From: Guillardia theta CCMP2712 | Lineage: Eukaryota > Protista > Cryptophyta | Assembly: GCF_000315625.1 (NCBI RefSeq) | Contig: NW_005434495.1 | Coordinates: 1 to 64,000 of the forward strand | Length of the DNA stretch: 64,000 bases | Direction of reading: 5' to 3' | Shown: positions 44,801-57,188 of the stretch, one piece after another | Position numbering within the stretch: position 1 is the stretch's first letter | Layout of the letters: each line of letters opens with the position of its first letter | The notes under the pieces: model-generated | Database searches by the model: none | The model's input: the letters and a program-made list of their open reading frames with translations, nothing else | What the model was told of the DNA's origin: nothing | Position numbers and translations under genes: made by a program

Positions 44801-45190
44801 CAGGGATGACGAAGGCGCAGGAGGTGCTGGCACGGTGACTTCGAAGAGGGAAGAGCAGACTTCAAGCGCGCGCTCTTGCTCGACCCGCACAACAAACAGC
44901 TCCAAGACGATGTGAGCGATGCTGGAGGAGGAGGAGGAGGAGGAGGAGGAGGAGGAGGAGCAATCACCGTTGAATCTCTGAGACGGGGGAGGCGGAGGAG
45001 GAGGAGGAGGAGGAGGAGGAGGAGGAGGAGGAGGAGAACCTGACTGTCTGTTCAGGTTTCGATGCTCGTCACCACCACCGGAGCAGCCAAGAGTCTCTCA
45101 GAGTTCATGGGAAGCGCGTTGCCGGATGCAAGGAGCCATGCCCTCGCTGCCCTCGAGGCCGCAGGGATCCAGCGACCTCCGGGAGCATAG
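41844..45190 (+). CDS. DNAAF4: Dynein axonemal assembly factor 4 (DYX1C1/PF23)-like: CS domain, charged region and TPRs
   Basis: MPLTPQFKW...IKVTSPPYFLQLDLY (CS domain), LPPPRSAGRVELNFT, then WLKMRGDHFY and further TPRs. Confidence 0.8.
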
Positions 45191-45276
45191 GGGGAAAGAG
45201 GGAGAGCAGGAGGATGACATGGAATGAAATATAATGATAACAAGAGCAAGCAGAGGCGGGGGAGGCAGCTCCTACT

Positions 45277-48200
45277 TTACATGTTCTCAGCGACACCTGC
45301 AGGTGCATCAGGAGAAGAGACGAGCAAGACAAGGAGCGATGAGGAGAGAGGGAGCAGGAGGAGAGAGTCTTGCCTGCCATGACGTCGAGGAACTGGCTGA
45401 GGTCGTTGGGGCTGACATGAAATTGGACCTGACACTGGGATTCAGCTGGGCTCCTGCTCTTTCTGACCTCCTGCTCACCCGGCAGAAGTCGTAGATGACG
45501 AACTGGAGGGCGATGAGAGCGCCGCCGAAGAGGATGCGAGGCTGAAGGCCGATGAGGATATCTCCCCATCTCCTACTCGCTACCCACGTCCTCCACGCGC
45601 TCCCCAGTGTCGCTCCTCTCGACTCGCTAGCCTTGGCGAAGAGATAATCCCCCGGCTGTGACGTCACTGCCGACACCATCCCAGCTATCGTCCCTACACA
45701 TCGTCACAATCGCGCCCAGCTCTGCTCGAGCTGATACCGCTGACCAACGAGACGAAGAGGATGGAGCCGAGATCGTCGCGGAGTTCAGGGAAGGCGAGGA
45801 AGATGCTAGTCTTGGTCACATCGAAGACCGCAAACTTGGACATGACGAAGAGAACGTCTTTAACCAGCATTGGAACCTGCGAAAAAGCTCTCACTTCCTC
45901 CTCCTCCAGCTCCTCCTCCTCCCCTCACTCCTCCCCTCTGCTCCTGCTCACCAATCCACTAAACAGGGAAGACCACCCTTCCTCTTCCTGCATCCTGTTC
46001 CATCCCTTGATCAGGCTGCTCCCAGCGAATTTTTCGTCGGCGATCAGCCTGGCAATCGCATGAGCTGCGGTTGGAAGACAGCAGAGCTTCACCTCGTCTT
46101 GACGGCCATGAATGGACAAGCTGCTGCTGCCGCGAAGACAGCAGCTGTCACGCTGGACAACACAACGACGGGAACAGGGTAAAGCAGAGACTGCGAGGAC
46201 CATTCAGTTCTTCCACCACAATTTGAGCAGACAGACCAGCTTGGGTCCAGCTAGATCCGCAAAGAACCTCCTGAAGAACTCTGTACCTCCGAAGGACAGA
46301 GCCCCGTAGATGCCGAACCCAGCCACCTCCGGCTGACGTGACGTGTCAAACTCACGGAGGCCTCACAGTTTTGAACCTGCAGGCCTCTGAGCAGAGCTGT
46401 CAGCCCTCCTTCCTTAGTCAAAACTTTGACTGCTGCATCCAGCAGCCCATCGTACGTGCCCTGTGGTGCTGTCTGCAAGAGGCCGTCACGCTCACGCGAG
46501 GGCCCAGCAGGTGTTCACCTGCATGCGGATCTTGACGGTGTCAAGAGGAACAAGAGCGGCGTGCGCGAAGCTGGCACAGATGGCTCCACTCGCTGCAAGG
46601 CGCCAGTAGACACTGCAAGGAGTTGAGAAGGAGGAGGAGGAGGAGGAGGAAGAGGACCTGCCATCTAGGTTCGACTCTTTCTCGATAGGAGCCCGTCTAG
46701 AAACTTTCCCCAGAGGCCCGAAGGGCGTAGAGATGTTGTTGCCCAAAAGAGACTTCTCGACGAAGGAGAAGCGGTTGGAGGAGGGATCATACTCAACGCG
46801 GACCTGTGAGAGCAGGTGAGACATTTGCAGCTGCTGTAGGATTTAGAATCGAGAAGACCGATGAAGGGAGAAGACGCGTCAGAACTTCGTCAATGGTCTT
46901 GGTGTCCTGTGAGTTCATTGCAACCTTCTTGGCACTTGTGTTGCCTGAAGTAACTCAGAAATGCCGTCCACCATCACCTCAACATACCGAGTCGTCCGAA
47001 GGTGGCAATCGCCGTTGCTGTTGTTCCGTTCGTGTCTCCCCCCGAGTCTATGGGAGATTGTACTTTGACCTGCGTCCTACATCATTCAGAGAGCGCTCAG
47101 TTCCAGGTCTACCTTCCACGGGCAAGAAGTTGTATATCCAGCTCCCGGGTTCAAGATCTCGATCCGATCTACCTCTTTATCCAGTACAGCATATCCTCTT
47201 CCTGCTGCTGCCATCTGATCCTCCGACTCGTCGGGCAGGAAGTTCACTCGCAGATATTCCTTAGAAACTCGTCCGATCCCGCTCCCTGCCGCCTTCATCT
47301 TCACTCCCACTACTCGCCCATCCTCCACGACAGCCTCTGCCTTGGGCTTCTTGAAATTTTCCTCCATCATCCCCATCTTGGCCAGTTCATCAAGCCCCTC
47401 AAACACTACACGCGGAGGCTTCGAGAAGTTTCCACCCCCGTCCTCAACCTCCACTCTTAGGATCTTTCCGTTGGGCCGCAGGAGACATTTCGCTTGAGCT
47501 TTGACCGCAGGATCGTAGTCGACCAGCACATCGACTTCAGGCGCAGCTCCTGTGTACCCTGATCCTCGTGATACCAGCGAGACTTTGGTCAGGCTCGCGT
47601 TCTCCCACATTGACAGCACAGACTGAATCTCTTGGGTGGGTTGGAACTTGTCCATCAAGGTGAAGAGGAAGCCGATCTGCTGCAGGGCGTCTCGATCGGC
47701 CGATCCAAACCTTCGAACCAGCAGCTTGACCAGACGCGCAGCTCCTTCCGTCCCATTGTACGACTTGAGCCCATACTCCACCGAGGCAGAGAAAGATGCG
47801 AACTGCTCCAATCTCTTGTCTTGATATGCGTCCATCGGCAACACAGAAAGCTCCTCTCCTCTCCTCTTCCACAGTGCCATGCTGCTGGCATCATAATTCA
47901 GGAGAAATTTGGAAAGGTACTCTATGAAGCGCAGGGAATAAGTCGATTCAGCAGCGTTCATGTTGGTTCTGATCGCTGACCCCTCTGGCCCAGACACCGG
48001 ACGCCAAACGAGACCAGGCGGCTGCTTGGCGGCGGCTCGGCGCTCTCCAACAGGAAGAAAGAACCCGGAGAGAGCAGCAGCGCTCACGACAAGCATGCTC
48101 CTTCGCGCTACTCCTTCTCTTCTGATCTCATCCTTGCCGCTTTCCGGGCGTGACACTGCACTAAGCAATCGAAGCCCGCCACCCTTCTTGCGCAAGGTTT

Positions 48201-48318
48201 TCGGGGGGTTGGAAATCACCCTCCTTGTTGGGTGCAATGTCGAACCTGAGAACAGAAAGCATTCTACTTGAAAGCACAATAACGCCCAAGCGAGGAGCAG
48301 GCAGAGAAAGGTTTTCAT
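45277..48318 (-). CDS. Mitochondrial carrier family protein (phosphate-carrier-like) with plastid presequence, twin-arginine-like signal and long soluble N-terminal domain
   Basis: Three carrier motifs VPLDTVKIRMQ, CPFMAVKTR and SQPGDYLFAK; N-terminus MKTFLCLLLAWALLCFQVEC-F; RRSMLVVSAAALSG..AAA. Confidence 0.82.
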
Positions 48319-48690
48319 GAGTTCCTTCACTGGACTTCGTCAGGTCATTTTACCTAGAAAGCAGAAATCATGGAGTGAAATTACAGAGCATCAGACAACT
48401 TGTAAGCTGCAATTACACGTCTAGAGTTACAACCCATCTCTCACCTACACCTGACAACCCTGTCAAGTGCTGAGTGCTCCCTGGTAAACAACTCCTGCTG
48501 CTTTGGTACCATCTCTCATCTTTGGTCCGATCCTCTCAACTCACAGTCGTGCAGTTATCTTGTGGGTTGTTCTCACTTACACTTGTTTCTCTTTCGTCAT
48601 TAGTAGGCTTGTTGCATCATCTAGCAGGTATAAAAATGGATATGGAGGTGTGTGGGGTCAATTCACATTCCTCTCTGCCGTTTCTCATCA

Positions 48691-55852: not shown

Positions 55853-57188
<1,336 letters not shown>

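Follow-up and report, generated by a model that had tools for sequence, protein, structure and literature searches.

The window, a 64,000-nucleotide stretch of Guillardia theta DNA, carries on its minus strand, from 48318 to 45277, a 12-exon gene whose product has 824 amino acids. The coding region (45277..48318) begins with the ATG at 48318 and ends with a TAA stop at 45279-45277. The exon lengths total 2475 nt, equal to 824 codons plus the stop, and exon-by-exon translation with phase arithmetic gave an open frame throughout. The parts of the product follow one another in the order signal peptide (VEC before F), basic transit stretch, RR with hydrophobic core and AAA, helical domain, four GxGY repeats, linker and six-helix carrier. 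All features listed in the first-pass annotation, namely the VEC-F signal peptide, the basic segment, the RR-core-AxA leader, the four repeats and the carrier motifs, are present.

Exon 1 (402 codons) is spliced to the carrier exons in transcript contigs of two runs. Ten of the 11 junctions are spanned without mismatch by X3 record 6 (2740 nt) and X7 record 8 (2498 nt), and the last junction is present in X1 and X7 contigs and in two raw X19 reads. X3, X7 and X1 are assembled contigs labelled 'RNA?', whose intron-less joints indicate that they are cDNA-derived; some introns are retained in X1 record 3. The raw RNA reads of X19 are of low depth and cover the 3' end of the gene only, where they give the strand and the two reads over the last junction. 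The introns are GT-AG in all cases but the last, which is GC-AG. The locus is one gene with one spliced transcript, as had been proposed: the contigs span the junctions between the parts that might have belonged to separate transcripts. The first-pass annotation had joined an exon at 47086-48318 to the carrier exons. The joining stands, but the exon stops at 47113 with a GT donor directly behind it, upstream of an in-frame stop at 47086, and two small linker exons between it and the carrier exons (47069-46988 and 46944-46859) had been missed. Exon 2 (46988..47069, minus strand, 82 nt), defined by transcript joints, is colinear with the relative P0002, and exon 3 (46859..46944, minus strand, 86 nt), defined by transcript joints and homologue comparison, contains a conserved L-L-P motif.

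The targeting leader and the soluble domain

The first 20 residues (48259..48318, minus strand) form an ER-type signal peptide (best 10-aa hydropathy, 2.8) that ends in VEC with F at +1, matching the small-x-small before F layout of the published targeting rule for cryptophytes and diatoms (PMC5784005). The following stretch (aa 21-70; 48109..48258, minus strand), the boundaries of which are inferred, is transit-peptide-like and contains 11 K+R, 4 D+E and 9 S+T. A twin-arginine leader (aa 71-97; 48028..48108, minus strand) comes next, consisting of RR (aa 72-73; 48100-48105), a hydrophobic core of 16 residues (best 13-aa Kyte-Doolittle mean, 2.2), a basic c-region and AAA (aa 95-97; 48028-48036). 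The lumenal phycoerythrin alpha subunits of G. theta have the same layout, with a signal peptide cut before F or Y, a transit peptide, and RR, core and AxA (PMC5784005), which bears out the earlier reading of a tripartite presequence. Their passengers are small and soluble, however, whereas the passenger of the fusion precedes six membrane helices.

A twin arginine that varied among orthologues had been named as grounds for refutation, but the motif proved to be conserved. The RR is aligned in all homologues of the displayed alignment, and RR with a hydrophobic core occurs in 112 of the 119 homologues that have the N-terminus, 51-88 aa ahead of the core motif of the helical domain; the seven exceptions include RK in three and KR in one. 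The leader consensus across the family is [S/T/N]-R-R-x-F-[L/F], and A-x-A follows the leader core in 87/112 homologues. When 52 homologue leader segments were searched, Pfam TAT_signal matched eight (best E, 3e-7) and the Rieske Tat-signal family PF10399 matched four. The G. theta leader itself gave no match to either family at E up to 0.1, and its A-R-R-S-M-L is a weak fit to the family consensus. A small-x-small layout before F, Y, W or L, scored with a crude regular expression rather than with ASAFind, was present in 56/86 homologues with an N-terminal hydrophobic stretch. In cryptophytes, the tatC gene lies in the plastid genome (PMC7058160).

Between the leader and the linker lies a soluble domain of approximately 300 aa, which according to the AF2 model is two-part and confidently folded (pLDDT 91.4 for the domain as a whole and 94.8 for the beta part). 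The first part (47599..47955, minus strand) is modelled as a conserved domain of six helices that belongs to no known family and carries the core motif F-x-x-Y-L-x-[RK]-x-L-L. The second (47113..47601, minus strand) is a beta domain with four GxGY-type repeats, recognised in the sequence as GSGY (47554-47565), GGGN (47428-47439), GSGI (47275-47286) and GAGY (47134-47145), all on the minus strand. The soluble-domain profile reaches E-values down to 1e-124 in homologues from other lineages, and the observation is therefore beyond chance.

The soluble domain is without a solved or functionally characterised counterpart. It gave no Pfam or NCBIfam family, and PHROGs returned weak phage matches alone. 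Foldseek against the PDB found no match for the whole domain and none for the beta part. For the helical part, a wide structural search gave a best Z of 4.5, below the meaningful level, and an ESM-atlas feature search gave no usable match. An atlas shape search returned only the family itself and phage proteins of low TM score.

The GxGY repeats show a weak likeness to modules of phage tails and baseplates. They are matched by PHROG baseplate-wedge and virion families (E 2.4e-4 to 7e-3), and a PDB profile search with the beta repeats gave the tailspike Dpo31 at E 0.0014. In structure comparison, the beta domain aligned over 78 aa with a fragment of T4 gp18 (outer domain) at Z 4.8; this score is well separated from the 2.6 of the next unrelated chain, yet lies below the trust level. 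The phage likeness noted in the first-pass annotation is thus consistent across searches but remains weak in score. GxGY-type repeats also occur in 9-22 copies in giant multi-repeat proteins, including open frames in the G. theta genome, and a Pfam search of six giant repeat proteins indicated that the repeat is absent from Pfam. The fusion shares such beta-hairpin repeats with T4-like phage tail and baseplate proteins and with giant bacterial and algal surface proteins, but it has four copies only, joined to a helical domain and a carrier. Because all similarity scores are weak, the likeness to the phage repeats need not mean common descent.

The carrier domain and its relation to the mitochondrial phosphate carrier

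The carrier begins in exon 4 (46519..46803, minus strand), which contains a conserved linker, a poly-Ser run and helix 1 with its His and PLDTVKIRMQ; this exon alone scores 24.9 bits against PF00153 Mito_carr (cut-off 22.3; E 1.8e-5). The remaining exons, all on the minus strand, were assigned by transcript joints and alignment. They encode the repeat 1 loop (exon 5, 46377..46472), helix 2 (exon 6, 46237..46332), helix 3 with motif 2 (exon 7, 46093..46190), the repeat 2 loop (exon 8, 45952..46048), helix 4 (exon 9, 45738..45876), helices 5-6 with motif 3 QPGD (exon 10, 45479..45693) and a family-specific C-terminal tail, D-L-x-x-F-L-D-V (exon 11, 45374..45428). After the GC-AG intron, exon 12 (45277..45296), the joint of which is seen in X1, X7 and the two raw X19 reads, supplies the last five codons and the stop. 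The G. theta product was analysed exon by exon rather than as the joined 824-aa sequence, and comparisons were made partly via full-length orthologues. When exons 4-11 were compared individually, they fell in sequence along residues 507-820 of the orthologue P0060 and along an alignment of mitochondrial phosphate carriers (PiC). Judged from these alignments, the carrier has three tandem repeats of two helices each and is colinear with a complete SLC25 carrier.

Concerning the P-x-[DE]-x-x-[KR] motifs, PLDTVK on helix 1 fits, and PFMAVK on helix 3 is without the acidic residue, confirming the Met for Glu that had been noted earlier. Helix 3 carries PFE in most of the family; the Met recurs in L005, a second cryptophyte-like relative, and its surroundings are strongly conserved between the two cryptophyte-type sequences. 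The helix 5 motif, QPGDYLF, has no basic residue, as in PiC (PADxxV).

As judged from sequence comparison, the carrier derives from the mitochondrial phosphate carrier lineage (PiC/SLC25A3/MIR1), in agreement with its earlier classification as phosphate-carrier type. The carrier part of a full-length orthologue is 31% identical, in register, to a plant mitochondrial PiC (E 4e-41), compared with E 1e-11 to 1e-4 against solved carriers other than PiC (GGC1, UCP and AAC). G. theta exons 4, 6 and 7 match PiC at approximately 1e-4 each; a search of PDB sequences with exon 4 was uninformative. In a tree with only two other G. theta carriers as the outgroup, the fusion carriers form a clade with 100/100 support, which is joined to PiC at 100/99 and sits on a long stem of 1.89 changes per site. 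Moreover, a helix-1 His, five residues ahead of the motif-1 Pro, is present in G. theta exon 4 and is shared by every family member and every PiC row. This His is required for transport (His33 of PIC2, His75 of SLC25A3; PMC7924939). CPFE-x-x-R-I-R and SNPAD are kept in most family members, in common with PiC. The carrier part is conserved across phyla; between G. theta and P0002, the conservation of the N-domain exceeds that of the carrier. A canonical PiC of G. theta, distinct from the fusion and free of introns, lies on contig C2.

The fusion therefore resembles PiC (SLC25A3, yeast MIR1/PIC2, plant PHT3) in its three-repeat, six-helix carrier with approximately 31% identity in register, in the helix-1 His, in CPFE-x-x-[KR]-[IV]-R and S-[NH]-P-A-D, and in its tree group. 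It differs from PiC in approximately 520 extra N-terminal residues (leader, two-part domain and linker), the conserved C-tail, the plastid-type targeting, the long branch, and the Met that replaces the motif-2 Glu in cryptophyte members. Carriers of this superfamily normally have little sequence beyond the carrier itself; known exceptions are the ATP-Mg/Pi and aspartate/glutamate carriers, in which a large N-terminal calcium sensor of the EF-hand type faces the mitochondrial intermembrane space, the 'cytoplasmic' side of the carrier. These carriers are like the fusion in having a large N-terminal soluble domain, and may offer a model for a regulatory lid, but they have EF-hand domains where the fusion has a helical bundle and GxGY repeats that match no Pfam family.

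Distribution of the fusion family

A profile search returned dozens of 50%-identity clusters of proteins of 700-990 aa that span the entire soluble domain. Of 40 long homologues, 34 contain PF00153 (best E, 3e-45). In the atlas, the family cluster has 65 members, all with Mito_carr and all eukaryotic, mostly from diatoms. Named members belong to Fragilaria, Seminavis, Grammatophora, Attheya, Amphora, Corethron, Chattonella, Chrysoparadoxa, Prymnesium and Chrysochromulina, and the fusion is also found in transcriptome-derived proteins of many species. At the sequence level, cryptophytes, haptophytes, diatoms and other ochrophytes share the complete architecture, RR included; a search for it in diatoms and haptophytes had been suggested. 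The first-pass annotation had also tied the protein to the lumenal phycobiliproteins of cryptophytes. We know of no lumenal phycobiliproteins in diatoms, haptophytes or other ochrophytes, and the tie is rejected because the family occurs in these lineages.

In public records, the Fragilaria crotonensis annotation divides the orthologue into two models, and the automatic UniRef name of the Prymnesium parvum member, 'ADP,ATP carrier protein', is in our opinion a misnomer. The literature searched contained no description of this carrier fusion family. MCFc of Phaeodactylum (PMC12645085) and the carriers of a diatom preprint (10.1101/2024.12.16.628690) are different proteins. MCFc is, like the fusion, a mitochondrial-carrier-family protein sent to a red-lineage complex plastid; unlike it, MCFc is approximately 40 kDa, is without a large N-domain and was described as ADP/ATP- or amino-acid-carrier-like rather than as PiC (PMC12645085). 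The searches likewise returned no mitochondrial-type carrier that combines a Tat leader with a lumenal domain. To our knowledge, none has been described.

Proposed location and function

On balance, we favour the view that the gene specifies a nuclear-encoded, 824-aa protein of the complex plastid, with a PiC-type carrier in the thylakoid membrane and an N-domain placed in the lumen via Tat, which makes it a candidate phosphate transporter. We infer thylakoid location, Tat dependence and phosphate transport along the following lines. The protein would first reach the plastid stroma by the standard bipartite pathway, Tat in the thylakoid would then export the folded N-domain to the lumen, and the RR segment would be cleaved after AAA or retained as a signal anchor, leaving the carrier helices in the thylakoid membrane. 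The N- and C-termini of carriers lie on the 'cytoplasmic' face. For this reason, the 'cytoplasmic' face and the family-specific C-tail would point toward the lumen and the 'matrix' face toward the stroma, which would give the carrier its mitochondrial orientation with respect to the proton gradient. In the light, a Pi/H+ symporter of the PiC type with this orientation would carry phosphate out of the acidic lumen into the stroma, beside the ATP synthase. If the N-domains of calcium-regulated carriers are a guide, the lumenal domain would most likely be a regulatory or docking lid at the lumen-facing mouth of the carrier. We know of no described precedent for Tat-dependent insertion of an N-terminal passenger plus six helices, and the biogenesis route is therefore speculative.

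The Glu-to-Met replacement in motif 2 may change proton coupling in the cryptophyte branch, and because the Glu is missing there, Pi/H+ symport may fail in G. theta; the long stem of the fusion carriers implies that the substrate, too, may have changed. There is thus a minor chance that the thylakoid location is as proposed but that another solute (copper, sulfate or a nucleotide) is carried, or that the carrier is mainly a membrane anchor for the lumenal domain. SLC25A3-type carriers, including the PIC2 relatives, also transport copper (PMC7924939), and the better conservation of the N-domain between G. theta and P0002 would suit such readings. Nevertheless, the helix-1 His, CPFE-x-x-R-I-R and SNPAD are retained in most members, the carrier part is conserved across phyla, and the strong conservation around the motif-2 Met argues for constraint rather than decay.

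Location in a plastid membrane other than the thylakoid, with the inner envelope as the likeliest, and with the RR segment as a non-Tat transmembrane or stop-transfer anchor and the soluble domain in the intermembrane space or stroma, seems improbable to us. Plant plastid carriers of the superfamily are mostly envelope proteins, the G. theta leader is missed by Pfam TAT_signal, and its core hydropathy of 2.2 is sufficient for a membrane anchor. MCFc, a different protein and the sole diatom plastid carrier studied so far, was also assigned to the envelope (PMC12645085). However, the Tat consensus is kept position by position over three algal phyla with RK and KR as the only variants, which a plain anchor would not need, and homologue leaders do match TAT_signal and the Rieske family. 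Moreover, no envelope Tat system is established.

Finally, two adjacent genes wrongly merged (a secreted or lumenal protein and a carrier), to which the in-frame stop at 47086, the two Fragilaria crotonensis models and the introns kept in X1 record 3 might point, are ruled out by the spliced contigs over all junctions and by the fusion in transcriptome-derived proteins of many species, just as an ordinary mitochondrial carrier with a long presequence is ruled out by the hydrophobic, plastid-type N-terminus with F at +1 in place of an amphipathic presequence and by the separate PiC on contig C2, so that we regard either explanation as highly improbable.

The favoured thylakoid phosphate carrier would share its proposed role, thylakoid solute exchange in the service of the ATP synthase and lumenal nucleotide metabolism, with two thylakoid proteins of the green lineage, the Pi transporter PHT4;1/ANTR1 and the ATP/ADP carrier TAAC, and TAAC is itself a member of the mitochondrial carrier family (PMC5948301). 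PHT4;1, in contrast, belongs to a different transporter superfamily. We know of no Tat leader or lumenal domain in either protein. A review records PHT4-type thylakoid Pi transporters in green and red algae alone and TAAC in the green lineage alone (PMC5948301), so that diatoms, haptophytes and cryptophytes seem to have a gap where a transporter for lumen-stroma phosphate exchange would be expected. As a tentative extension, this PiC-derived family of cryptophytes, haptophytes and ochrophytes could be the missing exporter of phosphate or a related anion where PHT4 is absent, inserted into the thylakoid with the aid of Tat, with a folded lumenal domain of approximately 300 aa ahead of its six helices and a phage-like lid that might gate it according to lumen conditions.

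The corrected gene model is useful for annotation, since some public annotations, such as that of Fragilaria crotonensis, divide the gene. The soluble part, as modelled, represents a new, confidently folded domain that is partly common to the giant phage-like repeat proteins of G. theta. If the proposed location and route are true, a protein in which the Tat leader precedes first a large folded passenger and then six helices would extend the known range of Tat and define a new class of polytopic Tat substrates, and the family would show the re-routing of a host-derived mitochondrial carrier across five membranes. The family offers a concrete, widely conserved candidate for a thylakoid phosphate transporter, the knock-out of which is feasible in transformable diatoms.

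Transcript evidence and gene structure

On the minus strand, short frames resembling a carrier lie downstream of an open frame of 414 amino acids (48330-47086). Pfam recognised Mito_carr in one of the short frames (46824-46495; 24.9 bits, cut-off 22.3) and no family in the large first frame. Four public runs were compared with 45000-48600. Two contigs, record 6 of run X3 (2740 nt) and record 8 of run X7 (2498 nt), extended from upstream of the start codon through the carrier exons with zero mismatches, precise skips and continuous record coordinates. The runs are tagged 'RNA?', yet they are cDNA-derived, because the joints lack introns.

After the exon borders were corrected by the alignment cut offsets, the contig junctions defined twelve minus-strand exons: E1 (48318-47113), E2 (47069-46988), E3 (46944-46859), E4 (46803-46519), E5 (46472-46377), E6 (46332-46237), E7 (46190-46093), E8 (46048-45952), E9 (45876-45738), E10 (45693-45479), E11 (45428-45374) and E12 (45296-45277). 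Ten introns are GT-AG; the last (45297-45373) is GC-AG, a junction found in X1 and X7 and in two raw RNA reads from X19. The exons total 2475 nt, with phases consistent up to a TAA at 45279-45277, and encode 824 amino acids. The start and stop proposed in the first-pass annotation were correct, but its first exon was 27 nt too long (the donor follows 47113), and it lacked the two linker exons E2 and E3. Since the spliced contigs join the first exon to the carrier exons, separate transcripts are not indicated, and this is almost certainly a single gene combining leader, soluble domain and carrier.

Several local features were also observed. A run of nine Ser codons (46618-46662, minus strand), lacking in the relative P0002 and the complete orthologue P0060, lies in the linker directly before the carrier; it was skipped as a repeat in the read comparison. 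Record 3 of X1 (45950-46472, depth 30) matches the genome continuously through three introns, which reflects retained introns or else carried-over DNA in that run. Within 45000-45300, a convergent plus-strand gene, TPR-like by eye, ends with poly(A) sites at 45243/45245, about 32 nt from the carrier gene's stop at 45277; the two 3' UTRs probably overlap, because X1 record 1 fuses both 3' ends. The cryptophyte-like metagenome relative L005 (112-2847, plus strand) is intron-free from the leader through carrier helix 1, a region with four introns in G. theta; intron positions therefore differ among close relatives.

Carrier ancestry and the fusion family

The window protein was analysed exon by exon, and whole-protein analyses used natural full-length database orthologues. 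Exons 4-11, each taken singly, matched P0060 in order. The carrier part of P0060 (residues 540-831) found many same-family fragments, named 'solute carrier family 25 phosphate transporter 3' by JGI, and beyond its own family matched plant mitochondrial phosphate carriers (PiC) at about 31% identity. Its pairwise alignment to a Kalanchoe phosphate carrier covered 268 residues in register (E 4e-41). Among solved carriers from other subfamilies, GGC1, UCP1/2, AAC and OGC reached only 1e-11 to 1e-2, out of register. In a maximum-likelihood tree, which took in neither the un-joined window exons nor two truncated family rows, eight fusion carriers formed a single clade (100/100) on a long stem, and the split between PiC plus this clade and two further carriers of G. 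theta had 100/99 support. Judged by sequence comparison, the fusion carrier is thus shown to be of PiC ancestry, as first proposed. Because an intronless canonical PiC is present on contig C2 of the same genome, the window gene is an additional copy, and a derived one.

The window carrier retains the helix-1 His, PLDTVKIRMQ, the helix-4 KF-x-x-FD and SQPGD, and ends in a family-specific tail, D-L-x-x-F-L-D-V, that PiC lacks. As the first-pass annotation noted, the second motif carries Met for Glu, reading CPFMAVKT versus CPFE-x-x-R-I-R in the family majority. The same Met occurs in L005, the sole other cryptophyte-type sequence reaching this strongly conserved stretch, which argues for a constrained lineage-specific change rather than decay. 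The corresponding Glu of yeast Mir1p has been linked to proton coupling, which we take as a lead only. The long stem of the fusion clade and the Met of the cryptophyte branch, together with the transport of copper by SLC25A3 relatives (PMC7924939), would fit a carrier that has taken on another substrate or serves as an anchor, a reading that we consider unlikely although it has these points in its favour. Phosphate is the candidate substrate, held tentatively and at a confidence slightly below even.

A word-based search with exon 1 retrieved nine relatives, including two with PF00153 and one from the diatom Fragilaria crotonensis. A soluble-domain profile scored against 1.84 billion representatives matched dozens of proteins of 700-990 amino acids carrying the whole soluble domain once (E down to 1e-124), and giant proteins of 2000-7900 amino acids carrying only the repeat part, 9-22 times. 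Mito_carr was present in 34 of 40 long single-match proteins. Independently, an ESM-atlas shape search returned a family cluster of 65 members, all eukaryotic, mostly diatoms and 100% with Mito_carr. By source names, members occur in diatoms (Fragilaria, Seminavis, Grammatophora, Attheya, Amphora and Corethron), the raphidophyte Chattonella, Chrysoparadoxa and the haptophytes Prymnesium and Chrysochromulina, so that the same architecture is present in both diatoms and haptophytes. All named members are annotated as 'hypothetical', 'unnamed' or with automatic names. The F. crotonensis orthologue is split in public annotation into the adjacent models MHU86_7387 and MHU86_7386, and transcript-derived proteins of its cluster have 992 amino acids. 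One Prymnesium parvum member is named 'ADP,ATP carrier protein' in UniRef, likely a misnomer.

Leader and soluble domain

All three leader elements proposed at first are present in the window sequence: residues 1-20 form a hydrophobic signal peptide ending in VEC with F at +1, residues 21-70 are rich in basic and hydroxylated side chains (11 K+R, 4 D+E and 9 S+T), and residues 71-97 run from A-R-R-S-M-L through a hydrophobic core of 16 residues to E-R-R-A-A-A. The layout is that of the tripartite presequences of lumenal phycoerythrin alpha-1 subunits in G. theta, which comprise a signal peptide cut before F/Y, a transit peptide and a lumenal targeting domain of RR, hydrophobic core and AxA (PMC5784005). 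Cryptophyte TatC is plastid-encoded (PMC7058160).

An RR plus hydrophobic stretch aligned with the window RR in every relative extending far enough N-terminally. Among 119 retrieved proteins having 60 or more residues ahead of the helical-domain core motif (F-x-x-Y-L-x-[RK]-x-L-L), a set including some near-duplicates so that counts are of sequences and not independent events, 112 had RR and a hydrophobic core 51-88 residues upstream of that motif. The seven exceptions were three RK (one Chattonella cluster), one KR and three lacking any motif, which are probably cut gene models. Position -1 was S/T/N in 94 of the 112, +2 was F in 67 and +3 was L/F in 80, and A-x-A followed in 87; as a sequence pattern, this is the classical Tat consensus S/T-R-R-x-F-L. 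RR conservation in orthologues, on which the initial proposal depended, was therefore found. Among 52 leader segments of 45 amino acids each, Pfam TAT_signal matched eight (best 3e-7) and the Rieske Tat-signal family four; the window's own segment matched neither. An envelope carrier with a non-Tat anchor is disfavoured by this position-specific consensus, and we regard it as rather improbable. Two separate genes or a mitochondrial location are highly improbable, given spliced contigs crossing the junctions, a separate canonical PiC on C2 and an N-terminus that is a hydrophobic signal peptide with F at +1, not an amphipathic presequence.

AlphaFold2 modelling of the soluble domain (48-sequence alignment; pLDDT 91.4, pTM 0.75) predicted that domain residues 32-142 form a bundle of six helices and that long beta hairpins come after it, the beta part alone reaching pLDDT 94.8; in these models the N-terminal passenger is shown to be confidently folded. 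Foldseek against PDB found no match for the whole domain or its beta part, and a wide VIA structural search gave no Z of at least 5, with generic matches only for the helical part. Three tail-sheath entries of T4 type, covering gp18 residues 99-187, aligned with 76-78 residues of the beta part at Z 4.4-4.8; the next chain reached Z 2.6. PHROG baseplate wedge and virion structural families matched the repeats at 2e-4 to 7e-3, and a phage tailspike matched at 0.0014 in a profile search of PDB sequences. The suggested phage likeness of the GxGY repeats, which are absent from Pfam, was thus supported consistently, although weakly.

The same genome holds about ten stop-free frames of 2800-4184 amino acids with GxGY-type repeats (E 1e-8 to 7e-4) on contigs C194, C90, C207, C146 and C25. 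The helical domain occurs once more, on C43 around 55885-56163 (L002:322-2073, plus strand; profile E 8.8e-22), behind an RRR-hydrophobic leader; neither beta repeats nor carrier was detected nearby, and an assembly gap cuts the frame off. Adjoining this paralogue, L002:1795-3227 (minus strand) encodes tandem Cys-rich EGF-like units of about 55 amino acids with poly-Gly spacers.

Putative thylakoid placement and role

By established targeting rules, the ER signal and transit peptide would deliver the protein to the stroma, and the Tat leader would then direct transport of the N-domain, in folded form, through the thylakoid membrane. We consider a thylakoid carrier with a lumenal N-domain moderately probable. 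Mitochondrial carriers have both termini on the 'cytoplasmic' face, so this face and the conserved C-terminal tail would face the lumen and the matrix face the stroma. The thylakoid lumen is the acidic, positive side, like the mitochondrial intermembrane space. Electroneutral Pi/H+ symport of the PiC type would, in light, run from lumen to stroma, returning phosphate to ATP synthase and keeping lumenal phosphate low. The weakest part of the proposal is the role of the N-domain: in analogy to the EF-hand N-domains of carriers regulated by calcium, it might form a lid that serves in regulation or docking.

No thylakoid phosphate route is known for these algae, because reports of PHT4 are limited to green and red algae and those of TAAC to the green lineage (PMC5948301). 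The published diatom plastid carrier MCFc, a 40-kDa protein, differs from the fusion carriers (PMC12645085), which were not described in the full-text literature searched. The fusion carriers belong to a known transporter family, in an architecture that this literature does not describe and in a compartment that is probably new.
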